Below are positions 7,472 through 64,000 of a stretch of DNA of 64,000 nucleotides, piece by piece. The translations under genes were made by a program, and so were the position numbers. The DNA lies in IMG/VR virus record IMGVR_UViG_3300023184_000027, positions 1 through 64,000 of that record; one strand, written 5' to 3'. Below the pieces are notes generated by a model that saw only the letters and a program-made list of their open reading frames with translations, made no database searches and was not told the DNA's origin. How positions within the stretch are numbered: the stretch's first letter is position 1; the number at the start of each line of letters is the position of its first letter.

Positions 7472-7777
7472 TTAATGTTTTATTTGTGTTTGTAAAAAAT
7501 AATTTTCTATTCTTTTCATATCTTCTTCCAATCTTTTAATTCTGGTGGATTGTTCCACATCCATAGGCCAAGCGTTATGTCCGTTAGCACTTTCTTCTAT
7601 CGCCACATTGGTTCTGTCTGATTTATCTTTTAACATTTCATAACTATGTTCCAAGTTAGTTAATCTACCACTAACCTCCGAATACGCCCACACAGCCATA
7701 GAAACAGCTATAACAATTTGAATTAACCACTTAATATTTAAGTTTATTTCCGTTGAATCATTTAATTTATTTTCCAT
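7472..7777 (-). CDS. Membrane-anchored coiled-coil protein
   Basis: N-terminal hydrophobic segment WLIQIVIAVSMAVWAY followed by heptad-like region. Confidence 0.55.
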   Translation of the reverse strand: MENKLNDSTEINLNIKWLIQIVIAVSMAVWAYSEVSGRLTNLEHSYEMLKDKSDRTNVAIEESANGHNAWPMDVEQSTRIKRLEEDMKRIENYFLQTQIKH

Positions 7778-7821
7778 ATATATAAATATTTGAAAAGTAA
7801 ATAGAATTCACTAAATTTAAA

Positions 7822-8100
7822 TTATTCTGAAATATCTTCAATACCGGCATCAGGAAAATTATCTTGAAGGTATCTCAACATTAAATCATTTGAGTTTCCC
7901 CCAAAGAAATCCTCCAACTCATCTTCCATATCATAACTTGCAAATATAAAACTACTTTTATTTTTCCATCCAAAAACATCCCCGTAACTCTTTAAATTTT
8001 GAAACTCCTTATGTTCGGGGTCATAAATTAAATTTGTTCGGTGATTAATATATTTAACGAACGCATCGTACATTCTACTTTCGGTGATTAGTATTTTCAT
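7822..8100 (-). CDS. Hypothetical protein with ITE leader
   Basis: MKILITESRM. Confidence 0.7.
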   Translation of the reverse strand: MKILITESRMYDAFVKYINHRTNLIYDPEHKEFQNLKSYGDVFGWKNKSSFIFASYDMEDELEDFFGGNSNDLMLRYLQDNFPDAGIEDISE

Positions 8101-10572: not shown

Positions 10573-10590
10573 ATTAATAAATATACCATC

Positions 10591-11382: not shown

Positions 11383-11451
11383 GTAAATAAATATACATTG
11401 CCAATAAAAAAGGGTCGGTGTGGTATAACACAAATAAAAATTCCCCAGAGT

Positions 11452-15299: not shown

Positions 15300-15605
15300 C
15301 CCAAAATGGGGGGATTTTTTCCCAAAAATTTTTCCAGAATTTTTTAGAAAAATTTTCTATAAAAGTTTTTTTTACCCATACACAATGTAGAGAGGATTAT
15401 CCCCCCTTTTTGGATATAGATATGGGGGGGAGCCAAGGGAGGATACGCCCCCGGTAGGGGGTATGGGGGGTATATAGGGGGGGATGGGAGGGTGTATGGA
15501 CAAAAAACCCCCCTGTAAATAGATAAGGGGGGAGGGGGTATATTTGATTTATCCTAATGAATGGGGGAAAAGTTATCAACATGACATGGTGTCAGTTGTT
15601 AATAA
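15300..15605. other. Non-coding G-run-rich tract with palindromic DnaA-box-like site
   Basis: Many G4-G7 runs on + strand (15424-15538); TTATCAACA-TGACATGGTGTCA-GT-TGTTAATAA at 15573-15605. Confidence 0.6.
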
Positions 15606-15607
15606 GT

Positions 15608-16057
15608 TTATTCATTGTAGACAATAAAGTTATGAACACTTGGTTGAGCGGGATATAGTTTATCGGGATTACCATACTCTGACTCATAGGTATAAAATCT
15701 TTTGAGTTCATCGGGGATGTATGAGTAGGCTGTCTTATAGTGGCTGTCTATCTTAGTTCTGAAGTTGTACATCTCTTTATCTTGGTTTGCGTATAGTTCT
15801 TGGAAGAATCCCCCAATTGAGTAAGTGGAGTTATATTCATTGTTTGGGTCCTTAAGTCTTATGGCCCAATAGTCCTCGAGGGGAATGTTGAGGTAATCGG
15901 ATAACATATAGAAATCAATGTATAGGTCAATGACAGTAATACCACCATACTTCTTATAGTCTTCCCCATATTTCCATCCTTTAATGAATGGGTATTTCTT
16001 TGATACAGCTTTGGTTGTTATATCAAACCCTTTAGTTATTAATTTATTTTCTTCCAT
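15608..16057 (-). CDS. Hypothetical protein
   Basis: 149-aa ORF with ATATTTATA upstream. Confidence 0.7.
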   Translation of the reverse strand: MEENKLITKGFDITTKAVSKKYPFIKGWKYGEDYKKYGGITVIDLYIDFYMLSDYLNIPLEDYWAIRLKDPNNEYNSTYSIGGFFQELYANQDKEMYNFRTKIDSHYKTAYSYIPDELKRFYTYESEYGNPDKLYPAQPSVHNFIVYNE

Positions 16058-16082
16058 ATGATATAAATATATTGAAATAATG

Positions 16083-17455: not shown

Positions 17456-17812
17456 TTATTCACACTCTTTAATAAATTTTGGGAATATATCTACCGGATG
17501 TCCTGTGAAATCATATATTATATTCCACACCTCATCTATTAAATTATCGTATCTAATCTGTACCGCTTGGGTTTGAGGCCAAAACTTGGTTCCTATTCCC
17601 CCGATAAATGTTATATCCACCCTGTAGTGTTCGTGTTCATAAATATTCTCCGGTAGTTTCGTCCTATTACTTGGATGTTTAACTTTTACACCACAGATGA
17701 TATCTTGGTTATCCTTAACCAACATCTTATTTAATAACTTCTCTAATATTGGGGACAAATCCTTATTTACTTCCTCCATTATTATTCTTCTTATGGTTGT
17801 TTGTAAGTTCAT
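17456..17812 (-). CDS. Hypothetical protein with MNLQ..IRRII.EE leader
   Basis: MNLQTTIRRIIMEE. Confidence 0.7.
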   Translation of the reverse strand: MNLQTTIRRIIMEEVNKDLSPILEKLLNKMLVKDNQDIICGVKVKHPSNRTKLPENIYEHEHYRVDITFIGGIGTKFWPQTQAVQIRYDNLIDEVWNIIYDFTGHPVDIFPKFIKECE

Positions 17813-17818
17813 AGTATC

Positions 17819-18382
17819 TTAATAGAATGTTTTTAGTTTCATATAGGGTTCTAAACCATATTTGTCTATTATTTGTTTGAAGATTTGTTGTCTGTGTCTT
17901 AAACCTAATGTATTTTTTTGAGTAATAAAACCATAACCAAATCCTGAATCCCCACTTAACCCCACAACTTTATAATAGGGTTGGTTATGAAGTTTTATTG
18001 GGTATAATCTTGCGGTGAACTTATACATCATATGGTCTTTGGCTCCGAATCTAAAATCCCCCAATTCTTTTTCACCACGATGTTGTAGTCGTGTATTATT
18101 ATTTAACCCAAGTTTTTCAACCAACGCGTCATGTAAATATAAAGACTTTTTGTCTACCGACATATATGCAAGTGGTGTATGAGTATCTTCACTGAACTTC
18201 ATAATATCACCATCATAAAGAACACTTATTAAATAATCAATCCCACCGATTAATTTAGATGTTACATCTATCCCTAATTTTTTTAACATTGATTTCATAG
18301 AATCTTTTTTTGATTCAGATTCTTCGGATATAACCCCACCCATCATTTGTTTTATCCTGTTTGTTTGTTCTTGTAAGTTCAT
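17819..18382 (-). CDS. Hypothetical protein with MNLQE leader (start corrected to 18382)
   Basis: MNLQEQTNRIKQMMGGVISEE; ATATTTAT directly upstream. Confidence 0.75.
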   Translation of the reverse strand: MNLQEQTNRIKQMMGGVISEESESKKDSMKSMLKKLGIDVTSKLIGGIDYLISVLYDGDIMKFSEDTHTPLAYMSVDKKSLYLHDALVEKLGLNNNTRLQHRGEKELGDFRFGAKDHMMYKFTARLYPIKLHNQPYYKVVGLSGDSGFGYGFITQKNTLGLRHRQQIFKQIIDKYGLEPYMKLKTFY

Positions 18383-18432
18383 ACATATAAATATAAAAAA
18401 AAGGGAAAATATTACTTTTCCCTCTTTTAATT

Positions 18433-18714
18433 TTATCTCCCCTCGTATTGCCATAGAACCGCATTACAATAAGCATGTACCGCTCCTTCAGTCATATTTG
18501 TCTTATGACAATGTTGTAGATGAATTGGGTAATTTAAAAATCCCTCCGGAAACAATCGCCAATTGATTGGATTCTTTGTTATTCTTTCAGGTGCAACCTC
18601 ATCTAATGTCTCCCCACAATACATACATAGATTATCCTGTTCCTTAATATATTGTATTCTAACCTCTCTTCGTTGTTGAGGTTTTAATTTTGTATAATCT
18701 GTTGGTAATTTCAT
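18433..18714 (-). CDS. Small endonuclease VII/HNH-like protein
   Basis: Q...CMYC...HLQHCH.T....G..H..CN. Confidence 0.6.
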   Translation of the reverse strand: MKLPTDYTKLKPQQRREVRIQYIKEQDNLCMYCGETLDEVAPERITKNPINWRLFPEGFLNYPIHLQHCHKTNMTEGAVHAYCNAVLWQYEGR

Positions 18715-18715
18715 A

Positions 18716-19282
18716 TTATTGAAGTCTTACAGGTATCTTATGTTTTGTTCCATCGGTTCTTGAATATACAGCATATTGTGGTGTCATTATCATTTCATTA
18801 TGCTCATCACCCAACATATTAATATAATCATTACCTTTGCCAGGTTTAAGATATGCAATAGTCATATGTGGATGATAGTCAGGGTAATCACTTGTGAATG
18901 GAAATTGTTTTAATTCCTCGTTTGTATCATTTAGATTATCCCCCATTATATCATACTTTAATACATCATACTTTGGGCTGTTGAAACAAGATAGGTTATG
19001 AGCTTTACAATTTGTATAACTATACTTATTTAACACATTTATTATGTCGTCAATACTCACCTCGTTATCGTGTAATCCGTATAATAATGTACAATGTGAA
19101 TCCGGTTCTAAACCAAACCCCTCTTCTTCGGTGTATAAGTCATCAGGGTTTATCTTATTGTGTAATTCCGTAATAGAATCAGGGTTAAAATATAACATCG
19201 CACAAGAATATGGATATGTTTGTTTGTTCTCATTTATCCCCATCATTGTTTTGATTTTTGTTAGCTGTTCGTTTAATTCCAT
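18716..19282 (-). CDS. 2H phosphoesterase, Acb1/T4 57B-like, with leader
   Basis: Two HxT motifs (HCTLLYG, YHPHMTIAY); leader MELNEQLTKIKTMMGINE. Confidence 0.75.
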   Translation of the reverse strand: MELNEQLTKIKTMMGINENKQTYPYSCAMLYFNPDSITELHNKINPDDLYTEEEGFGLEPDSHCTLLYGLHDNEVSIDDIINVLNKYSYTNCKAHNLSCFNSPKYDVLKYDIMGDNLNDTNEELKQFPFTSDYPDYHPHMTIAYLKPGKGNDYINMLGDEHNEMIMTPQYAVYSRTDGTKHKIPVRLQ

Positions 19283-19411
19283 AGTATATCTGTTTGGTAA
19301 TGAATAGGTGATTCCCCCCGATTAATCAAGCGTTTGTTTTTTGTCTATTAATAGTAAATAGTCAAAACATAACCATAATAAGCTATAGATGTATTCTATA
19401 ACTTATTATGG

Positions 19412-19546
19412 CTATAAGGTTTGGGACTTATATTGTGGGTTTATAAGGTTTGGAACTTATATTACACATTTTGGTAATATGTGGTGAATTATACTTATCT
19501 TTGGTGAATTGTGGTTATATTAATCACCCGATGGTGAAATATACTT
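19412..19546. repeat. Short degenerate direct repeats in intergenic DNA
   Basis: TATAAGGTTTGGRACTTATATT x2; TGGTGAAWT x3. Confidence 0.6.
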
Positions 19547-20009
19547 ATTTGTAATAGTTTAATGTGTCAAGCATAAATAGGAAAACATCATTTAATGTGT
19601 GATTATCAAAATTTTTGTATTTCTCCTCAAAATCTGATTTATGATAACCCTCGTAGTAAACATCTATTACAGCAGATTCCGGGCCAAAATACTCTATCTG
19701 TCGTACCTCATCGCCTGATATACTATATGGGACAGGACTTAAACCTAATTCATATATAGAAATTCCGATTGTATTATAAGGTTTTGCTAAATGTTGGACT
19801 GAATCTTTAATGAAATCAATCTTATCTTCTTTTGTTAAATTAAAACTATCACCATACATATTCTTAATAGTGTCATAACCACCGAAAAGTTTAATGGTGT
19901 AATATAACCCCATTTTATCAATGATTTTTTGTATCTTTGCGGACTTATCGTCCTCATTGATAACCCCCATCATTTGGTGGATTCTATGTATATTCTCTTG
20001 TAAGTTCAT
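19545..20009 (-). CDS. Hypothetical protein with MNLQE leader (start corrected to 20009)
   Basis: MNLQENIHRIHQMMGVINE; N-terminal domain resembles 17819-18382. Confidence 0.75.
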   Translation of the reverse strand: MNLQENIHRIHQMMGVINEDDKSAKIQKIIDKMGLYYTIKLFGGYDTIKNMYGDSFNLTKEDKIDFIKDSVQHLAKPYNTIGISIYELGLSPVPYSISGDEVRQIEYFGPESAVIDVYYEGYHKSDFEEKYKNFDNHTLNDVFLFMLDTLNYYK

Positions 20010-20010
20010 A

Positions 20011-20784
20011 TTATTTTTCTTCCGGTAATTTTGTATCTTTGATAAACTTCTTATGTGAATCCTTATATGATTTTTGTGTCTCATCATTCACATTTTTTGT
20101 ATATTGCCAGTTCCAATACAAGTCATCGTTTGGTTTGAATCCGTAGAACTCATGAACTTCTTTTTGTGTTTCACTTACAACCTCACCATTCCAATTCTGA
20201 CCAACACAGATGAATCCTGTCTCAATATCCTCAACAAGGTTTGATTCCCCCAATGTTGCATGTCTATTCTCAATCCAAGTCAATCTCTCAATTAAGTTTT
20301 GGTAGAACATATTGGTTTGTCCCCATCTTACCGAACTAAAGAATATAACTGCGTCTGACTCAAATAACTCTTTGGATATCTTCCATAGTTCGTCTTTAGG
20401 ATTATTAATACTTGCCCAACATCTATGGTCTCCGGATGGATTCTTTTTCTTATCTTTGAGCATTGACTTTAATATCCCACAACTGTTTCCGTCTTTTCTT
20501 GAAACATTCCCCTCACAAGGAACAATATTAAGTTCGGAAACATCAATTAGGACCGATGTATCTTTTAACTCATCGTTAAGATACATTGCAATCATCTTTG
20601 ATTTTGGTATGTCAAGGTTTTTTTCATCCCAATTATATCTATTGGAACAACTCAATAACAATACCTTTTTCTTTTTCTTTAGAATGTCTAATGTTTTCTT
20701 TATTGATTTCCATGCGTCCGATTGAACCATCTCCTCAGCAATCATCATTTCCCTTATTCTAATTATATTTTCCTGTAAGTTCAT
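20011..20784 (-). CDS. Flavodoxin-fold protein (NADPH-FMN reductase / iron-sulfur flavoprotein-like) with leader
   Basis: LLLSCSNR, LNIVPCEG..S..C...C, SDAVIFFSSVRWG, LIERL; leader MNLQENIIRIREMMIAEE. Confidence 0.75.
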   Translation of the reverse strand: MNLQENIIRIREMMIAEEMVQSDAWKSIKKTLDILKKKKKVLLLSCSNRYNWDEKNLDIPKSKMIAMYLNDELKDTSVLIDVSELNIVPCEGNVSRKDGNSCGILKSMLKDKKKNPSGDHRCWASINNPKDELWKISKELFESDAVIFFSSVRWGQTNMFYQNLIERLTWIENRHATLGESNLVEDIETGFICVGQNWNGEVVSETQKEVHEFYGFKPNDDLYWNWQYTKNVNDETQKSYKDSHKKFIKDTKLPEEK

Positions 20785-20800
20785 AATAATAAATATATTG

Positions 20801-27419: not shown

Positions 27420-27533
27420 ATGTATAAATATAACACGAGAGTAAAAATTACTCCCATCTTTTGAACGAAGGTAATTTTGAGTTTTTTTTACTCTCGTTTA
27501 ATTCTTTTCATTAAATAGTAAATCTTATAAGAA

Positions 27534-33192: not shown

Positions 33193-33253
33193 ATCACTAT
33201 AAATATATCAAAATTAAATAATAGGTTAATATATTTATTATAAAATAACCTTT

Positions 33254-54712: not shown

Positions 54713-57700
54713 TTAACAACTTGACACTGTTATACCTCCAGCAGTATTAACCCACGAAATTCTCCATCCTTTTGCTTTCATTTGAGTTAAACCACTACAA
54801 GTACCTGAATCCGACGAACTTGGAAATGAGATATAACTATAATTAGACACAGTATTAATATTTGTTGCCCATCCAAGTAAAGTACTGGTAAGATTAGCAG
54901 GTGTTAAATCAAAAGTATTTCTAGGTCTATTAGCATCACCTGTCGATAAAGACCAAAATGATGCTTGCGCTTGGGTTAAGGATGATAAATTCCACGAACT
55001 AAGATTTTGATTAAGAGAAAAACAATTTGAAAACATAGAATCCGCAGTACTAATTTTTGATGTATTCCAATTATTCATTGGTTGATTAAATAAATAACAC
55101 CTTGCAAACATTCCTTGGGAATTTGATAATCTTTGTAGATTCCAAGTATTAACCGAACCATTAAATTTACGACAACTTCCAAACATAAAAAATGTATCGG
55201 TTATCCATTGCATTGTAGAACCAACTCTTTCCCAATTTGAACAATCTTGATTAAATTCATAACAATATTGGAACATGTAGGTAGTTCCCGATACTTTAGT
55301 AAAATTAAAATTGGTTAATGGTTGATTAAATGTAGTTGCGGAATAGAACATACTTGCTACATAAACAACACTAGATGTGTTCCAATTCTTAATTGAGTCA
55401 CTACCACCATTATTAAAATTAGTTGCCTCATAAAACATATATGTCATATCAGTAACACCTGTTACATTCCAATTACCAACATTGTGATTAAGTCTTGACG
55501 ACATATACATTTCATCCATGTATGTAACATTACTTGTATTCCAAGAACTAAGGTCTTGAGGAAGAGGAGCTGGCGTATTTACTGACCCTAAAATAGGTGA
55601 CGTTAAAGCAAACATTCTATACATTCCTATAATATTAGACACATTCCAATATTCTAACCCACCTACTTTACCTAATTTAGTACATCCATCAAAACAATTA
55701 TCAAGACTAGTTACCGTACCTAAATTAGGAGCATTCACACAAGTATCCATCGTTAAATTCACACAACCCATAAATAAAGCATCTGAATTACCAGGACTAA
55801 CATTATTTATAAATTTAATTGCTCCCCAATTATAAATTCTATCTAATAATTTCTTTTGGTCAGTAGATAAAGCCCTATAACTGAAACCATCAACTTGACC
55901 TGTTAATGTTATATCATAAGCCCATAATAAACTACTTGTTGTATATGTATGGAATCTTTGACTATAATTAGTTATTGTACTTGTTGTTCCATCACCCCAA
56001 TTAGCAACAAAATTATAAGTGCCATTACTAACTAAAGGTAATTCAATTGTTTTAGTGTTAACATAGTATGTACTATTACCCGCATTATTATTAACTCGCA
56101 AAGTCGCAACATTTGATACTAAATTTTGAGTTAAACAACTTGGAATTTGAGATGTGTCAACAATAAGTTTTCCAACATTACGACTATAACTAAGAGTATA
56201 CGGATAATTTAAATTAACCACATATGTTTTAGAGACTGGAGACACATCAGTTGTTGTTGACGATACATAAATATTATTGTTATATTGAAATAGACCCCAA
56301 GTATCTAAAGTATCTAAAGGTGGTATAAATAATTGAGTATCTACCTCTAATGTTCCTGTTAAGTAATCCCATTGAGTTAAATAACGATTAGAACCACTTA
56401 TATCCCTTGTAAGTGCTAAAAATTTATTAGTTGTTGTTTTATAAAAATCACCTGTAATCTCCCTATTTAACATTAACGAAAATTTAGTTGTCATAACCGC
56501 CGCTCCCGACACATCAATCTCAACCACTTTGTTAGGTGTGGTATTTGCGTTTACAGCTAAAATAACTGTGTCTGAAATCGATGCTAGTCCATTTGATTGG
56601 TAATAACCTGAAGGCCAAGGTATATCACGACTAAATGTCGTTACAAATGATGTTAACGATATGTTATATTCTTTAAACGAACTAGTATTATCACTTGAAC
56701 CCCAAAGTTTATTGCTCGTATGTGACATACCAGGTCCAATAGGAAAATTAGGAACTGTTAATTGTGTTGATGTATTTGCGGTAACATTATAATAAAAAAC
56801 ATTTCCGTTATTATCATTAAATAAAACACCACAAGTTGGTATAGCCGGATTACTACTTGGTGTTGGCGTTAGAGTTGGAGTTTGAGTATTTGTTTGAGTT
56901 ATTGTTGGTGTTGGCGTTGGTGTTGCTGGTAAATCTTGTATTAAACGAACTGACAGTCCCCAATTATAAGATGCTCCGACACCACCTGCAAATGCGTCAG
57001 TCGAACTAGAATTAATTGTAATGTAATAAGCTGTTGTAAGGTCGTACTCAGAAGAAGTCCACCAATAACCATTGGTACGAATACTACTGAATGTACCGAG
57101 ATTTGAGCGATAACCACCAGGAAGAGCCCTAAAACCACTATACGGTGTTAATATTGGATTAGGAGCGTTCCAATATGTTGTACCAGATAATTTCATCTTA
57201 CCTCCCGCAAATTGATATATTGTTGGAACTCCCGATTGAGTACCTAAAGATTCTATGACTGTAATCCATTCAGATTCTGTTGGTATATGATACCCTGATG
57301 GTGCTAACTTTTTTCTTAATGATGGGTTGGATGCTGACGCAGCATCATAGATACCTGCCACGGCATACCAATTATATAATTTTCCGTATGTGTTTCCAGT
57401 TATTGTGACATTATTATAATAACACCAAGCCCCTGTTGTTAACCCTGACCAAGCATTGACACCAGTTGTACCTGTCACTTGAGGTATTGAAGTACCATCG
57501 CTATAAGTCGTAACATTTAAATTACATACCGTCCAAATTTGAGTTCCAATAGTTACACCCGACTCTGGACAAAGATATGTTCTAGTCGGTGTCGGTGTAG
57601 GAGTTTTAGTTGATGTAGGAGTAGGTGAATTGGGTAATAACACCCCATTTATTTTATCTGTGTTTGCTTTAAGAGTATTGTTAGCACTTTTCATAGACGC

Positions 57701-57736
57701 TAACAATACATTATCAAATCTTTTAAGTAGTGCCAT
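54713..57736 (-). CDS. Large adhesin/fibre-like protein: FISUMP domain, PT linkers, PKD-like domain, DUF285/BspA-type repeats
   Basis: VTIGTQIW...NL...YGKLYNWYA...P.G.HIPT..EW...GF.ALPGG.R; TPTPT linkers; NWGDG; W(N/D)(T/V)S.VT.M..MF repeats. Confidence 0.8.
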   Translation of the reverse strand: MALLKRFDNVLLASMKSANNTLKANTDKINGVLLPNSPTPTSTKTPTPTPTRTYLCPESGVTIGTQIWTVCNLNVTTYSDGTSIPQVTGTTGVNAWSGLTTGAWCYYNNVTITGNTYGKLYNWYAVAGIYDAASASNPSLRKKLAPSGYHIPTESEWITVIESLGTQSGVPTIYQFAGGKMKLSGTTYWNAPNPILTPYSGFRALPGGYRSNLGTFSSIRTNGYWWTSSEYDLTTAYYITINSSSTDAFAGGVGASYNWGLSVRLIQDLPATPTPTPTITQTNTQTPTLTPTPSSNPAIPTCGVLFNDNNGNVFYYNVTANTSTQLTVPNFPIGPGMSHTSNKLWGSSDNTSSFKEYNISLTSFVTTFSRDIPWPSGYYQSNGLASISDTVILAVNANTTPNKVVEIDVSGAAVMTTKFSLMLNREITGDFYKTTTNKFLALTRDISGSNRYLTQWDYLTGTLEVDTQLFIPPLDTLDTWGLFQYNNNIYVSSTTTDVSPVSKTYVVNLNYPYTLSYSRNVGKLIVDTSQIPSCLTQNLVSNVATLRVNNNAGNSTYYVNTKTIELPLVSNGTYNFVANWGDGTTSTITNYSQRFHTYTTSSLLWAYDITLTGQVDGFSYRALSTDQKKLLDRIYNWGAIKFINNVSPGNSDALFMGCVNLTMDTCVNAPNLGTVTSLDNCFDGCTKLGKVGGLEYWNVSNIIGMYRMFALTSPILGSVNTPAPLPQDLSSWNTSNVTYMDEMYMSSRLNHNVGNWNVTGVTDMTYMFYEATNFNNGGSDSIKNWNTSSVVYVASMFYSATTFNQPLTNFNFTKVSGTTYMFQYCYEFNQDCSNWERVGSTMQWITDTFFMFGSCRKFNGSVNTWNLQRLSNSQGMFARCYLFNQPMNNWNTSKISTADSMFSNCFSLNQNLSSWNLSSLTQAQASFWSLSTGDANRPRNTFDLTPANLTSTLLGWATNINTVSNYSYISFPSSSDSGTCSGLTQMKAKGWRISWVNTAGGITVSSC

Positions 57737-57748
57737 TTTTATTTAAAT

Positions 57749-60700
57749 TTATGATATTTCAACCCAACTATTATCCGGACAGAAATATATTATATCATTT
57801 GTTGCGTCGGTACAATAACCAATGATTCTAACATTATTAAGTGATGCCGGTGGAGATGTTGAACTAAACGCTCCCGCAGTTGTTGATACATATAGTATAG
57901 AACCTAAAGTCGCTGAGGTAAATGATGTTGTACTAAATTTAGCATAACCTCTTAATAACATTCCACTACCAATTGTTGGCCCTAACGCCATACCTAATAA
58001 TCCTGTTGACCCAGAAACTGTTGTAGCATTTGCCAATGTCCAAGTACCACCAGTACTATAATAATAAACCGACCCGGCAGTTAATGTTGTACCTGTACCA
58101 AAATAAACAACTTCACCTGCACCTCCATTAACGGTAGGAACTGTATATATTTTATTTTTTTGAATATTAAGATTATTAACAAATGTTGTACAACTTGTTG
58201 TTGCTGTTAGAGAACTACCTATGATATGAACGTGTTGACAACTTACAGGTATTAAATTACATTTACCACCTAATATTGACGAATAAAATGCAGCGGTATC
58301 AATTTTATTACAATAACCACCAGAAATTGTAGATTCACTACCGTAATTCTTATTAAGACAACCACCACCAATATGTGAACAATTACCGCAAATCGTATTA
58401 GAATTACCACCACCGATAGAACCGTATGGTTGAGTGATACAATTACTATTACCACCTCCAATAAACCCTCCAGAAGATTTAATTATATTGAATAGACCAC
58501 CAGCAATTACAGAATTGTAATTAGTTGACTCAAATACACAATTAAAAGCACCCGCACCAATAAATGAATTAGAACCATTATTAGTATTTCGGTATCCACC
58601 ACCGATAACAGAATAACTACCACAAACAGTGTTTGCTAAACCTCCACCAATGAATGAAGAATCACCCCCTGGTAAACTTTTTGTTAAATTCCTAACAAAT
58701 GGAGTATTTCCAACACCGAAGTTTCCAACAGAAGCTGTTGCTCCGGTAACATTTACATATGTATATGAGCCGGTAAAAGTTGTTGCAGTCACCACAACAT
58801 TTCTAGAACAAGTAGAATCAAAAGTTAATAATAAGTCATTATTTGTAAAACAAGCAACACAATTACCAACAAACCTTAAACGACAAGCGGACATAACATA
58901 AGAACTCTCTATTGCTGGAGAATTACCCACCATATTTAAAACACCTCCATTAATATTTCCTTGACTACCACAAACAACATTTACTTGACCACCACCAACA
59001 AAACTAAAATTACTAGATACTTTATTATTATTACCTGAAACCATCCCTGAACCATAACCTATCGCACAATTACCACAACCACCTAAAATAGCCGCTCTAA
59101 CACCCGCAGTTTTATTAGAATTACCACCACCAATAACAGCGTCTTCACCACTATTAACAGCTCCCGCTATTGTATTAAATCTACCACCACCAATAAAACC
59201 TATTGTATTTGATATTGTATTATATCTACCACCACCAATTACCGAAGACTGACCACTCGCATTATTAGTATCACCACCACCAACAAACGAATAACTTCCA
59301 CTTATATTTTTACAACCACCCGCTATTGTTGAGTAAGAATTTAAAACACAATTTAAACGACCTCCGCTAATAGTTGATGAGGCTCCTGTTATACTATTAA
59401 GTACCCCACCACCAATTGTTGAATTACCATTAAGGATGTAATTACCAGAACCACCACCGATGGTTGAGTTACTCGATTTAACTGTATTTCCAAAACCACC
59501 ACTAATAGTTCCAAAAGTAATACTGTTACCAGATATTGCATTATCCTTACCACCACTAATGGTTGAATTACAATGGTCTGAACCATTAATTGTATTAGAA
59601 TATCCACCCCCGATAAATGAATTTTTTACTCGAACACCATAAATTGTATTGGATAACCCACCACTTACAGTATTGTCATATAAATAACGACTACTGGAAC
59701 CAAGACCTACTCTATTTAAATGACCACCACCAATAGTGTTACGTCCACTCGGATAAAGACTATTAGAGTTCATCATATTATTAGAACCACCCCCAATAAA
59801 AGACTCAAAATGCGAATACAACGAATTATCACATCCTCCACCAATAAATGAACAAGAAGAACACTCAACCTGATTGTTTCTACCACCCACGATTGTTCCA
59901 TGAGGAGATGAAGTATACACACAATTACAGTAACCACCTAAAGCCGCTGAATATACCCCATCTGCTTTATTACTAACACCACATCTAATGGATGAATTAG
60001 TACCACCACCTAATATGATAACGGGAGGATTAGGACTTGTTCCACTAGAACCCGCGGTACCCGATGAACCACTTGTTCCTGATGAACCACTAGCACCCGC
60101 AGCTCCTGATGTTCCTGAAGAACCACTAGTACCCGATGTTCCTTTAGTACCCGATGAACCACTAGTACCCGATGAGCCCGATACTCCTGTAACACCTGAC
60201 GTTCCTGATGAGCCCGATGCTCCTGTAACACCTGACGTTCCTGATGAACCACTTGTCCCACTAGACCCCGATGCTCCCGCAACCCCCGAAGTCCCTGATG
60301 AACCACTAGTTCCACTAGAACCTGATGTTCCTGATGTTCCACTAGAACCTGAAGTTCCCGATGTTCCACTAGAACCTGAAGTTCCCGATGTTCCTGAAGA
60401 ACCACTTGTCCCACTAGAACCTGATGTTCCTGAAGAACCACTCGTTCCGCTAGAACCTTTATCACCAGCTCTAGTAAAACTCACTATAACAGTATTTCCT
60501 GATATACTAGCTAATGACCCCGCATATGAAACGGAAGTAACACCAATTTGAGCATAACCAGCAGTTGTTGTAACACTTGTAATTTGATAATCACCATAAA
60601 GATTTACACCACCATAAGTTCTACCAAATCTTAAACTACCTTTTATTGTATTTGTACTTGCACCTAACGCTGTTAACCAAGATGTTGCAGTTCCACCTAT

Positions 60701-63700
60701 TCTATCCGTAAAACTAATTGATATTGTTGTTGTACCACTAAAATCCGGACCATTAAAATACATTTGACCTGAAGGTGGTGAACTTGGTCCAGTACTTAAT
60801 GCCGCTAAAGTCCATTCTAAACTATCACCACCATAATTACCATCTCTACCTGATGTTCCCGGTACGCCACTTGAGCCTGATGTTCCACTTGAACCCGATG
60901 TTCCTGAAGAACCCGACTCACCTGACGAACCACTAGTTCCCGATGAACCGCTAGTACCCGATGAACCACTTGTCCCTGATGTTCCTTTAGTTCCTGAAGA
61001 ACCTGAAGTTCCTGAAGAACCTGAAGACCCAGCAGCACCTGAAGCACCATTAATATTTGTTGTCCAACCCGTATAAGAACCTGAACCAGTTATATCAGTT
61101 ACTTTAACAGTTAAAAGTCCATTAGTAATATTGTAAACTTGAACTGTACCAATAAATGAACCTGAAGTATTCGCAATAATGATACTTTGACCTACAGTAT
61201 AAGACAATCCCAAAGATGTTGTTAATGATTGATTAGTATTAATAGATAAACTCGATAAATCTATAGGAGTTGTTGATTGACCTATAATTGCTAAACTAGT
61301 CCCCGATGAACCATCTCTACCCGCCGTTCCTGAAGAACCACTAGTCCCTGAAGTCCCTGAAGAACCACTTGTTCCACTAGAACCTGAAGTACCCGATGAA
61401 CCACTTGTTCCACTAGTTCCTGAAGAACCACTTGTCCCACTAGTCCCCGATGAACCTGAAGTACCTGAAGTACCTTTAGTTCCCGATGAACCACTTGTTC
61501 CACTAGAACCACTATTCCCACTAGTTCCTGATGTTCCACTAGACCCTGATGTTCCCGATGTACCACTAGAACCTGATGTTCCTGAAGAACCACTCGTTCC
61601 TGAAGTACCACTAGAACCACTTGTACCTGACGTTCCACTAGAACCACTTGTACCTGACGTTCCATTCGCACCTGATGAACCTGAAGTACCTGATGAACCA
61701 CTAGCACCTGAAGTTCCACTAGAACCTGACGTTCCTGATGAACCACTAGTTCCCGAAGAACCTGACGTTCCTGATGAACCCGATGCTCCTGCAACACCTG
61801 AAGTTCCTGATGAACCACTAGTCCCTGATGTTCCCGAAGAACCACTAGTCCCTGATGTTCCCGAAGAACCACTAGTCCCTGAAGAACCACTTGTTCCTGA
61901 TGTACCTTTAGTTCCTGAAGAACCACTTGTTCCACTAGAACCCGAAGACCCCGCAGCTCCTGATGTTCCTGAAGACCCCGCAGCACCTGATGTTCCTGAA
62001 GAACCACTAGTCCCTGATGAACCATTCTCACCTGATGAACCACTTGTCCCACTAGACCCCGATGCTCCCGCAACCCCTGAAGTCCCTGAAGTCCCTGATG
62101 AACCACTAGTTCCATTAGAACCTGAAGTCCCTGATGAACCACTAGTTCCACTAGAACCTGAAGTCCCTGATGTTCCACTAGAACCTGAAGTTCCCGATGT
62201 TCCTGAAGAACCACTTGTTCCACTAGAACCTGATGTTCCTGAAGAACCGCTAGTACCTGACGTACCACTAGAGCCGCTAGTACCTGACGTACCACTAGAG
62301 CCGCTAGTACCTGACGTACCACTAGAACCGCTAGCACCTGATGTTCCCGATGAACCACTTGTACCTGACGTTCCCGATGAACCGCTAGTTCCTGATGTTC
62401 CTTTAGTTCCTGAAGACCCTGACGTACCACTTGAACCTGATGTACCGCTTGAACCCGATGTACCACTAGTCCCTGAAGAACCACTTGTCCCTGATGTTCC
62501 TTTAGTTCCTGAAGAACCTGAAGTTCCTGAAGAACCTGAAGACCCAGCAGCACCTGAAGCACCATTAATATTTGTTGTCCAAGAGTTAAAATTTCCCGTT
62601 CCCGTTACACTAGTCACTAAAACAGTTAAAGTACCATCACCAATATTGTAAGCTTGAACTGTCCCGATAAATGAACCAGAAGGATTTGCAATAATTAAAC
62701 TCTGACCTACAGTATAAGACAATCCCGAATATGTTGTTAATAATTGAGGATTTCCAACCATTGAGGGTGATAAAGTTATAGGTGTTATTGATTGACCTAT
62801 AATAGCTAAACTTGTTCCCGATGAACCGTCCCTACCTGAAGACCCCGATGTCCCACTAGAACCTGTTGCCCCTGACGAACCACTTGTTCCACTAGAACCT
62901 GAAGTACCCGATGAACCACTCGCCCCACTAGAACCTGAAGACCCCGATGTCCCACTAGAACCTGTTGCCCCTGACGAACCACTTGTTCCACTAGAACCTG
63001 AAGTACCCGATGAACCACTCGCCCCACTAGAACCTGAAGTACCACTAGAACCACTAGTCCCTGATGTACCTGATGAACCACTAGTCCCTGATGTTCCACT
63101 TGACCCTGATGTTCCGCTTGACCCTGATGTTCCGCTTGACCCTGATGTTCCACTTGACCCTGATGTTCCACTTGACCCTGACGTTCCACTTGACCCTGAC
63201 GTTCCACTTGACCCTGACGTTCCACTTGACCCTGACGTTCCACTTGACCCTGACGTTCCACTAGTACCACTATTACCTGAAGAACCACTTGTTCCCGAAG
63301 AACCACTTGTTCCCGATGTTCCATTTGCTCCTGATGTCCCACTAGAACCGCTAGTTCCTGAAGAACCGCTAGTTCCTGAAGACCCTGACGTACCACTAGA
63401 ACCACTATTTCCTGAAGAACCACTTGTTCCTGAAGAACCACTTGTTCCTGATGTTCCACTTACCCCAGATGTTCCTGATGACCCTGAAGTTCCTGATGAA
63501 CCACTTGTTCCACTAGTTCCTGATGAACCACTTGTCCCACTAGTTCCTGATGAACCACTTGTCCCACTAGTCCCTGATGAACCACTAGTTCCTGACGTTC
63601 CTTTAGTTCCCGATGAACCACTTGTTCCACTAGAACCACTATTTCCACTTGTTCCTGATGAACCACTAGTCCCCGAAGAACCCGATGTTCCGCTAGACCC

Positions 63701-64000
63701 TGATATTCCTGATGTACCACTAGAACCTGATGTACCACTAGAACCTGACACCCCACTAGAACCTGATGTTCCTGAAGAACCTGATGTTCCACTAGAACCT
63801 TTATCACCAGCTCTAGCAAAACTCACTATTACCGTACCACCGGTTAAGTTTGAAGCACTACCATTAGATGAAACAGAAGTAACACCAATTTGTCCATAAC
63901 CATTTACTGTACTAGCACTAGTGATTTGATAATCACCATATATATTTGTTCCACCATAAGTTCGACTAATTCTTAAACCACCTTTTATTGTATTTGTACT
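57749..64000 (-). CDS. Giant collagen-like (Gly-Ser/Thr-Ser) tail-fibre-like protein, 5' end outside the window
   Basis: Hundreds of GSS/GTS triplets interrupted by repeated globular domains; IGGG..N repeats; frame stays open to base 64000. Confidence 0.8.
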   Translation of the reverse strand, partial: STNTIKGGLRISRTYGGTNIYGDYQITSASTVNGYGQIGVTSVSSNGSASNLTGGTVIVSFARAGDKGSSGTSGSSGTSGSSGVSGSSGTSGSSGTSGISGSSGTSGSSGTSGSSGTSGNSGSSGTSGSSGTKGTSGTSGSSGTSGTSGSSGTSGTSGSSGTSGTSGSSGTSGSSGTSGVSGTSGTSGSSGTSGSSGNSGSSGTSGSSGTSGSSGTSGSSGTSGANGTSGTSGSSGTSGSSGNSGTSGTSGSSGTSGSSGTSGSSGTSGSSGTSGSSGTSGSSGTSGSSGTSGSSGTSGSSGTSGTSGSSGTSGTSGSSGTSGSSGASGSSGTSGSSGTSGSSGATGSSGTSGSSGSSGASGSSGTSGSSGTSGSSGATGSSGTSGSSGRDGSSGTSLAIIGQSITPITLSPSMVGNPQLLTTYSGLSYTVGQSLIIANPSGSFIGTVQAYNIGDGTLTVLVTSVTGTGNFNSWTTNINGASGAAGSSGSSGTSGSSGTKGTSGTSGSSGTSGTSGSSGTSGSSGTSGSSGTKGTSGTSGSSGTSGTSGSSGTSGASGSSGTSGTSGSSGTSGTSGSSGTSGTSGSSGTSGSSGTSGSSGTSGTSGSSGTSGTSGSSGTSGSSGTSGSNGTSGSSGTSGTSGVAGASGSSGTSGSSGENGSSGTSGSSGTSGAAGSSGTSGAAGSSGSSGTSGSSGTKGTSGTSGSSGTSGSSGTSGTSGSSGTSGTSGSSGTSGVAGASGSSGTSGSSGTSGSSGTSGSSGTSGASGSSGTSGSSGANGTSGTSGSSGTSGTSGSSGTSGTSGSSGTSGSSGTSGTSGSSGTSGTSGNSGSSGTSGSSGTKGTSGTSGSSGTSGTSGSSGTSGTSGSSGTSGSSGTSGSSGTSGTSGSSGTAGRDGSSGTSLAIIGQSTTPIDLSSLSINTNQSLTTSLGLSYTVGQSIIIANTSGSFIGTVQVYNITNGLLTVKVTDITGSGSYTGWTTNINGASGAAGSSGSSGTSGSSGTKGTSGTSGSSGTSGSSGTSGSSGESGSSGTSGSSGTSGSSGVPGTSGRDGNYGGDSLEWTLAALSTGPSSPPSGQMYFNGPDFSGTTTISISFTDRIGGTATSWLTALGASTNTIKGSLRFGRTYGGVNLYGDYQITSVTTTAGYAQIGVTSVSYAGSLASISGNTVIVSFTRAGDKGSSGTSGSSGTSGSSGTSGSSGTSGTSGSSGTSGTSGSSGTSGTSGSSGTSGSSGTSGVAGASGSSGTSGSSGTSGVTGASGSSGTSGVTGVSGSSGTSGSSGTKGTSGTSGSSGTSGAAGASGSSGTSGSSGTAGSSGTSPNPPVIILGGGTNSSIRCGVSNKADGVYSAALGGYCNCVYTSSPHGTIVGGRNNQVECSSCSFIGGGCDNSLYSHFESFIGGGSNNMMNSNSLYPSGRNTIGGGHLNRVGLGSSSRYLYDNTVSGGLSNTIYGVRVKNSFIGGGYSNTINGSDHCNSTISGGKDNAISGNSITFGTISGGFGNTVKSSNSTIGGGSGNYILNGNSTIGGGVLNSITGASSTISGGRLNCVLNSYSTIAGGCKNISGSYSFVGGGDTNNASGQSSVIGGGRYNTISNTIGFIGGGRFNTIAGAVNSGEDAVIGGGNSNKTAGVRAAILGGCGNCAIGYGSGMVSGNNNKVSSNFSFVGGGQVNVVCGSQGNINGGVLNMVGNSPAIESSYVMSACRLRFVGNCVACFTNNDLLLTFDSTCSRNVVVTATTFTGSYTYVNVTGATASVGNFGVGNTPFVRNLTKSLPGGDSSFIGGGLANTVCGSYSVIGGGYRNTNNGSNSFIGAGAFNCVFESTNYNSVIAGGLFNIIKSSGGFIGGGNSNCITQPYGSIGGGNSNTICGNCSHIGGGCLNKNYGSESTISGGYCNKIDTAAFYSSILGGKCNLIPVSCQHVHIIGSSLTATTSCTTFVNNLNIQKNKIYTVPTVNGGAGEVVYFGTGTTLTAGSVYYYSTGGTWTLANATTVSGSTGLLGMALGPTIGSGMLLRGYAKFSTTSFTSATLGSILYVSTTAGAFSSTSPPASLNNVRIIGYCTDATNDIIYFCPDNSWVEIS

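Follow-up and report, generated by a model that had tools for sequence, protein, structure and literature searches.

An Acb1-like 2H phosphoesterase with a putative capsid-targeting leader in a freshwater phage contig

The gene, its enzyme domain and its leader

We analyzed the first 64 kb (the window) of IMGVR_UViG_3300023184_000027, a 207,952-bp viral contig of IMG/VR that comes from freshwater lake metagenomes, has a G+C content of 31.6% and is estimated to be 71% complete. Our subject is a gene of this window (Table 1) whose 188-residue product joins an Acb1-like 2H phosphoesterase to an N-terminal leader, MELNEQLTKIKTMMGINE (residues 1–18), which is predicted to be a capsid-targeting propeptide. 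The open reading frame (ORF) lies exactly where a first-pass annotation, made by a model from the DNA letters, had placed it; its strand, absent from that annotation, is minus. The two HxT motifs reported there are present as well, HCTLLYG at residues 63–69 and HPHMTIAY at residues 137–144. The protein has 366 homologues at E≤1e-3, with identities ranging from 96% down to ∼45%, and residues H63, T65, H139 and T141 are invariant in alignments of 26 and 42 members. The number of homologues and the invariant tetrad indicate that the gene and its motifs are real and not due to chance.

Table 1. Positions of the Acb1-like gene, its parts and its neighbors in the window (aa, amino acids; pLDDT, predicted local distance difference test).
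Feature	Position	Strand	Basis
Whole gene: 188-aa precursor, Acb1-like 2H phosphoesterase	18716..19282	-	ATG-started ORF, Pfam, homologues, AlphaFold2 model
Leader (residues 1–18), predicted capsid-targeting propeptide ending in I-N-E	19229..19282	-	pLDDT, sharing, conservation
Predicted mature enzyme (residues 19–188), 2H phosphoesterase domain	18719..19228	-	Fold model, Foldseek and VIA matches
First catalytic motif, H63-C-T65	19088..19096	-	Invariant; pairs with first HxT of BCSR5 Acb1
Second catalytic motif, H139-M-T141	18860..18868	-	Invariant; pairs with PHITLSY of T4 Acb1
Leader neighbor, 257 aa, MNLQENIIRIREMMIAEE..., cargo like FMN reductase/flavodoxin	20011..20784	-	Leader profile, Atlas
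Leader neighbor, 154 aa from leader Met, MNLQENIHRIHQMMGVINE..., commonest cargo family among leader matches	19545..20009	-	Leader profile
Leader neighbor, 187 aa from leader Met, MNLQEQTNRIKQMMGGVISE...	17819..18382	-	Leader profile
Leader neighbor, 118 aa, short leader variant MNLQTTIRRIIMEE...	17456..17812	-	Leader profile
Endonuclease-VII/HNH-like zinc-finger ORF, 93 aa, leaderless, not cargo	18433..18714	-	phrog_14729, E 8e-31

The AlphaFold2 model of the protein (pLDDT 88, predicted template-modeling score 0.80) is confident from about residue 24 to the end and has the two-lobed alpha/beta fold characteristic of the 2H superfamily, so that with motifs and fold in agreement the protein is almost certainly a 2H phosphoesterase. 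Its assignment within the superfamily is closer run. The Pfam Acb1 model PF23474 matches residues 61–145 with 29.7 bits (cut-off 27; E 6e-7), while the generic models for 2'-5' RNA ligase and for LigT score under their own cut-offs, and all 42 aligned relatives match PF23474 (best E 1.8e-8). Foldseek against the PDB ranks the Acb1 of Burkholderia phage BCSR5 first (9q2g, E 9e-6), followed by Usb1, the penguinpox cGAMP phosphodiesterase and the Acb1 of Erwinia phage FBB1 (7t27, 7t26); the Foldseek and VIA matches together span Acb1, Usb1, CPDase, LigT and the penguinpox enzyme, and the highest structural-alignment identities are to Acb1 structures. The four invariant residues correspond to the HxT/HxT tetrad with which Acb1 cleaves 3'3'-cGAMP, cUA and cA3 independently of metal (PMC9117128). 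“Acb1 family” is thus the best label on offer, but on the sequence comparisons a marginal one: the first-pass proposal of an Acb1-like 2H enzyme stands in its 2H part by motifs and fold, and in its Acb1 part narrowly, by Pfam.

The leader is an appendage on this fold. Model residues 6–19 have pLDDT below 50, structural matches begin at residues 19–26 (mostly 21–25), and residue 1 of FBB1 Acb1 pairs with model residue 24. In the leader, a short helix, predicted to be amphipathic (L3, L7, I10, M13/M14), leads to an I-N-E site at residues 16–18; E18 is conserved in at least 90% of orthologues, and the predicted cleavage point falls between E18 and N19. Because the orthologue of a Maribacter phage carries no leader, the extension is dispensable for the fold. 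An N-terminal extension ahead of the enzyme domain had been noticed in the first-pass annotation, and the analysis bears this out: the leader lies outside the fold, is common to unrelated proteins and ends in an I/L-x-E site.

A leader on unrelated genes, and the head protease

To follow the leader beyond this gene, we used profile searches. Over the whole contig a leader profile finds five ORFs only, all on the minus strand within 17456–20784, with the score that follows already down in the noise. The cluster is kept in four relatives (L003–L006), with cassettes gained and lost, and a complete 322-kb relative (G001), collinear with the window at 81–93% nucleotide identity, shows five leader matches within the cluster and a sixth leader gene outside it. 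In a search space of 1.84 billion representative proteins, a leader profile of 31 positions matches 551 protein clusters at E≤1e-3. The leader starts at residue 1 in 138 of the 148 best matches with a locatable leader start, its consensus is M-N-L-Q-E-[NQ]-I-x-R-I-[KQH]-x-M-M-G-[VIL]-[IL]-[NTS]-E, and similarity stops right after it. Phi-x-E (Phi, a hydrophobic residue) is present in all 148 top matches, a count biased by the profile itself. The cargo behind the leader is diverse: the 74 longest top matches fall into 46 unrelated groups, the Pfam domains found include ART-PolyVal, a phage lysozyme with a peptidoglycan-binding domain, GNAT, SET and UDP-GlcNAc 2-epimerase, and the majority of leader-tagged cargo belongs to no Pfam family. 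The 551 clusters carry at least 46 unrelated cargo groups. In a few matches (P0121, P0123 and P0140) the leader is internal or doubled, which may reflect fused or mis-called genes.

The leader also varies with lineage. Among 58 orthologues from viral contigs, 56 have Phi-x-E within the last nine residues before the domain, although the leader itself belongs to different types in different lineages: MELNEQ...GINE, MESQEFKRMQELAGIIVE, MIKLxDLLKE, MKLKTLLNSIKE and MKHIKLFEEFVTE, the last of which resembles the T4 capsid-targeting sequence (CTS) MKTYQEFIAE. In each lineage examined, the leader type of the enzyme is common to unrelated adjoining ORFs. A search of the complete genome G005 for the exact pattern M-I-K-L-x-x-L-Phi-x-E yields five genes: the Acb1-like one, three small unrelated ones and, in the head module, the one that immediately follows the protease. 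A reversed-pattern control finds none. This co-variation is the strongest argument that the leader is a capsid-targeting, protease-cleaved propeptide, and head-core proteins and cargo seem to share an N-terminal signal. The G005 gene directly after the protease starts MIKLRQLINEE, with the leader type of the Acb1-like gene of that genome (L091 2537–3472; G005:137443 onward), and the gene before the protease starts MKITKEQFKKIVREVLTEE (L091 745–1455).

A matching protease and a matching cleavage site are found in the head modules of relatives. G001 encodes a Peptidase_S77 prohead protease of the gp21 type (E 8e-25, 31% identity to T4 gp21), in which the T4 catalytic residues H85 and S140 are conserved, together with a gp23-type major capsid protein. 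T4 gp23 is made as a precursor of 521 aa and matures to 456 aa; when the capsid N-termini are aligned, T4 ...GSFLTE/AEIGG (the slash marks the cleavage site) pairs with G001 ...ASFLINE/ATSDG, and from this alignment the predicted capsid cleavage tripeptide is I-N-E. The same tripeptide closes the leaders of the Acb1-like protein (GINE/NK) and of a neighbor (VINE/DD). An S77 protease is present in 10 of 11 near-complete records carrying the enzyme, and by these comparisons the phage clade of the window belongs to the T4 superfamily. In T4, gp21 cuts after Glu in I/L-x-E motifs (PMC12991175). PHROGs gives no annotation for the head-module neighbors of the protease in G001 and G005, so a “scaffold” label for them follows from gene position only. 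A complex prediction for protease and precursor scored 0.00, which counts neither for nor against cleavage. Taken together, the protease, the I-N-E capsid site, the shared leaders and their lineage co-variation give strong comparative support to the packaging leader put forward in the first-pass annotation, and we consider it likely that the leader works as a head propeptide, for targeting or for processing.

Proposed delivery of the enzyme, and alternatives

These results can be put together as follows, in a reading to which we give slightly more credence than doubt: the protein would combine a capsid-targeting propeptide with a 2H enzyme of the Acb1 kind, packed into the head and injected. 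The precursor would be made during prohead assembly and taken by its leader into the scaffolding core, and the gp21-type prohead protease would cut it after E18, as it would cut the capsid protein at ...FLINE/A. The mature enzyme (residues ∼19–188) would stay in the head with the DNA, be injected into the next host, and hydrolyze cyclic oligonucleotide immune signals of the type used by the cyclic oligonucleotide-based antiphage signaling system (CBASS) from the first moment of infection. Hydrolysis would be 3' of adenosine, by metal-independent acid-base catalysis. The first-pass annotation had likewise proposed a virion-delivered anti-CBASS enzyme, one that would act ahead of all phage gene expression. 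By analogy with the action of Acb1, a cyclic oligonucleotide immune signal is the somewhat favored substrate.

Several observations weigh against this reading. Incorporation into the prohead, cleavage, injection and the substrate are all inferred. The contig itself contains no S77 protease, no gp23 and no head module, which we attribute to its being only 71% complete, so that the protease and the capsid protein of this phage are themselves predicted from relatives. The Maribacter phages Molly and Colly have a distant, weak S77-like protease, yet their orthologue is leaderless; the weak S77-like match also means that these phages, considered as a protease-free control, are not a clean one. The T4-type late promoter TATAAATA is not seen immediately before the Acb1-like gene, which leaves late expression unsupported, and public RNA runs contain almost nothing of the locus. 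The leader occurs in no cultured relative: its string is absent from 50,697 GenBank phage records, tblastn of a 23-aa leader query against this collection gives no match at E≤10, and megablast of the locus against GenBank phages gives none. The advantage of early delivery is not self-evident either, because gp21, through its proteolysis, can itself switch on CBASS CD-NTases late in infection (PMC12991175).

The Acb1 label has its own points of weakness. The margin over the PF23474 cut-off is 2.7 bits, and 39 of the 42 aligned relatives also match the generic model 2_5_RNA_ligase2 (PF13563) at similar E-values. A profile of the family against PDB sequences reaches Acb1 only at E 0.07, hhalign against T4 Acb1 gives a probability of 35% over 20 columns, and pairwise BLASTP aligns the T4 protein in the second HxT region only. 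The structural comparison with Acb1, which the first-pass annotation had proposed as a check, came out divided: Acb1 ranks first by Foldseek, but Usb1, CPDase and ligase-like enzymes score equal or higher by VIA Z (12.7–13.7, versus 11.3–12.2 for Acb1), and the model indicates that Acb1 and other 2H enzymes are not separable by fold alone. Acb1 has base-stacking aromatics (Y12, W74, F107 and W147), a residue E141 and, closing over the cyclic nucleotide, a C-terminal lid (PMC9117128). The aromatics conserved in the present family, Y25, Y31, F32, F100, Y136, Y144 and Y173, are at most candidates for the stacking role.

Alternatively, the protein could be packaged and injected and yet act as a generic 2H enzyme on another substrate, such as RNA ends with 2',3'-cyclic phosphates (in repair after anticodon nucleases, as by LigT/CPDase-like enzymes), 2'-5' linked oligonucleotides or other cyclic signals, for example those of type III CRISPR. 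The joint matches to PF13563 favor this, as does the assignment to phrog_755, labeled “RNA ligase” (T4 gene 57B, acb1, bears that same product name in its GenBank record); and in Maribacter phage Molly a gene with a HAD “RNA repair” domain lies ∼4 kb from the orthologue, on the same 10-kb stretch. We nevertheless regard another substrate as improbable, if the most serious of the alternatives, since Acb1 is the best Pfam model and the sole one over its cut-off, Acb1 structures give both the top Foldseek match and the highest alignment identities, and the gene sits in a putative injected-cargo cluster and not among RNA repair genes. An alternative concerning the leader, to which we give a little less weight still, is that it is a shared N-terminal module without a role in packaging, so that the enzyme would be confined to the cytoplasm of the producing cell. 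The module might gate a zymogen until the prohead protease appears, tag the protein for stability or degradation, serve as an oligomerization helix, or be a translation-initiation cassette spread by recombination. Packaging is so far an inference; late activation of CBASS by gp21 would make protease-timed activation of an anti-CBASS enzyme sensible; the opening codons (ATG AAC TTA CAA) hardly vary as nucleotides; and hairpin-plus-motif cassettes lie beside some leader genes.

Against a mere cassette, the conserved leader residues E5, R9, I10, G15 and E19 show synonymous codon variation, from which we conclude that selection acts on the peptide, and the upstream DNA of five leader genes, aligned in search of a DNA-level cassette, is not conserved beyond the start codon region. 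For packaging speak the G005 head-module gene that has the same leader next to the protease, the presence among the cargo of ART-PolyVal and lysozyme domains, which are typical of injected proteins, and the experimentally established capsid targeting of T4 proteins with the same architecture, in which diverse clustered cargo carries a shared leader with an I/L-x-E end (PMC3012670). Given the diversity of the cargo and this T4 precedent, packaging is the more parsimonious of the two accounts. It is, finally, very improbable that the leader is an annotation artefact and that translation truly starts at M13 or M14 (MMGINENK...), leaving no extension. The internal Met codons at residues 13 and 14 would allow it, but the 12 residues upstream of them are conserved as a peptide in orthologues of 45–96% identity and in the 551 clusters, nearly all leader matches begin at the annotated Met1, and the leaders of other lineages have no internal Met codons.

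The reading of the protein as a packaged enzyme of the Acb1 kind places it between two known systems. Acb1 (T4 gp57B, and the proteins of Erwinia phage FBB1 and Burkholderia phage BCSR5) is likewise a phage-encoded 2H phosphoesterase with an HxT/HxT tetrad. The neighborhoods are also alike: T4 acb1 adjoins ipI (Hobbs et al., PMC9117128), directly and on the same strand in the T4 record (NC_000866, 11592–12411), and the present gene lies in a likely cluster of anti-defense or injected proteins. The differences are an identity of only ∼16–21%, a longer mature domain (∼170 versus ∼150 aa) and the leader of 18–22 aa, since the solved FBB1 Acb1 has nothing that matches model residues 1–23 and in T4 Acb1 the fold is preceded by ∼9 residues only. 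On inspection, the nine residues that open T4 Acb1 (MMEFKDFST) look similar to the leader of IPI (MKTFKEFTS); the T4 Acb1 N-terminus might be a remnant or relative of a targeting leader.

The internal proteins of T4 are diverse defense proteins with only a CTS in common (PMC3012670). IPI, IPII, IPIII and Alt share with the proteins described here a short conserved leader on unrelated, clustered and rapidly exchanged genes, an I/L-x-E leader end, a protease of the gp21 type and the same site in a capsid protein of the gp23 type, and the ADP-ribosyltransferase Alt has a counterpart in the cargo set. In the T4 genome record the leaders read MKTYQEFIAE/A for IPII and IPIII and MKTFKEFTSTTTPVSTITE/A for IPI, with the ends ...IAE/A and ...ITE/A. 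Here the leader is different, 19 aa of the form MNLQE..RI..MMGxIxE in contrast to the 10-aa T4 sequence, with which it gives no convincing alignment; the cargo has no detectable homology to the T4 internal proteins, the scale is far larger (551 clusters), and packaging is a prediction. On all features that can be compared in silico, save leader homology to the T4 CTS, the architecture appears to be that of the internal proteins.

Among other 2H enzymes, the Pfam models for Usb1, plant CPDase, LigT and 2'-5' RNA ligase-like proteins, the penguinpox cGAMP phosphodiesterase, coronavirus ns2 and the rotavirus VP3 2'-5' phosphodiesterase all score under cut-off on this protein. None of these is known to have a capsid-targeting leader. 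A literature search found no description of an Acb1-type enzyme with such a leader or of this leader family, and the leader strings were not found in the searchable literature. That CBASS can be countered by a virion protein has a precedent in Gp15 of vibriophage ICP3, a component of the ejectosome (bioRxiv 10.1101/2025.07.23.666291). Unlike the present protein, Gp15 is an essential protein of DNA ejection and acts by stoichiometric inhibition of the effector CapV; it does not degrade a signal and has no cleavable targeting leader. By analogy, we rate the present protein as two known kinds combined, one that would work like Acb1 plus a T4 internal protein.

To our knowledge, all characterized Acb1 enzymes are thought of as made after infection. 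The protein described here, if the packaging reading is true, would be the first signal-degrading counter-defense enzyme that is delivered ready-made, and the timing of the CBASS arms race would be seen anew. A broader proposition, for and against which we find ourselves evenly divided, is that uncultured freshwater huge phages of the T4 superfamily use a very large, undescribed family of capsid-targeting leaders and carry dozens of unrelated enzymes as an injected arsenal, with the Acb1-like nuclease as a cargo that is conserved over many lineages of the superfamily and has its own leader in each. The arsenal would include, beside this nuclease, an ADP-ribosyltransferase, a lysozyme, GNAT and SET proteins and an FMN-reductase-like protein, and the pre-loaded destruction of cyclic-nucleotide immune signals would be a strategy both old and widespread, and not a single fusion. 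The leader provides a 19-residue sequence handle for listing candidate injected effectors, mostly of obscure function, in uncultured huge phages; its lineage-specific forms, ending in a protease site, make a natural experiment on the co-evolution of targeting signals and the prohead core; and foreign proteins tagged with leader variants could be packaged into non-model phages.

Neighboring genes and other features of the window

The four other leader genes of the contig (Table 1) have no PHROGs or Pfam match in their cargo, and Atlas gives a lead for the 257-aa protein only: its feature score is 0.91–0.96 to phage NADPH-dependent FMN reductase/flavodoxin-like proteins, and related models reach TM 0.7–0.9. 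A flavoprotein among putative injected cargo is unexpected. The relative L003, 96% identical, has two further leader genes that are absent from the window, at 7581–8081 (166 aa) and 15320–15754 (144 aa), and cargo cassettes are thus gained or lost between very close genomes. The endonuclease-VII/HNH-like ORF within the cluster matches endonuclease VII families more weakly than phrog_14729; in relative L005 an ORF of this kind lies on the opposite side of the Acb1-like gene, just upstream of 10001. Its placement suggests that it is a mobile element, which may drive the exchange of cassettes.

Terminator-like hairpins lie between the leader genes. One of them, with a 20-bp stem, is upstream of the Acb1-like gene (19369–19415, minus strand); another, G+C-rich and with a T-run (18397–18428, minus strand), stands directly before the motif TATATTTAT and the ATG of the 187-aa gene. 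Terminator-like sites in the leader region number 7, where 1.6 would be expected, and their arrangement is reminiscent of the stem-loop/promoter cassettes in hyperplastic regions of T4-type phages. The motif itself has 31 copies in the 208-kb contig, 13 of them within 15 nt upstream of the first ATG of an ORF; it stands exactly 4 nt before the first ATG in six ORFs and, as seen by eye, in the 187-aa leader gene (18382). Sites in the window are 20785–20800, 18383–18396, 10573–10590, 11383–11400, 16058–16075, 27420–27435 and 33193–33210, and further sites are at genome coordinates 119299 and 185922. Two leader genes and a gene for a gp25-like baseplate wedge protein are among those that it precedes. 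The motif may act as a promoter of transcripts that are nearly leaderless, and possibly as a late-gene signal.

At its far end the window contains a giant ORF, 57749–64000 (to 65128 in the genome), of 2,025 aa in the window and up to 2,459 aa in the contig. It consists mostly of collagen triple-helix repeats (Pfam Collagen, E 2e-127), with a local G+C content of 45% as compared with 30% elsewhere, and a similar ORF of 2,126 aa lies at the other end of the contig (201441–207821). Adjoining the collagen-like giant, a 1,007-aa protein encoded on the minus strand at 54713–57736, with a Fib_succ_major and three DUF285 domains, is probably a fiber or adhesin.

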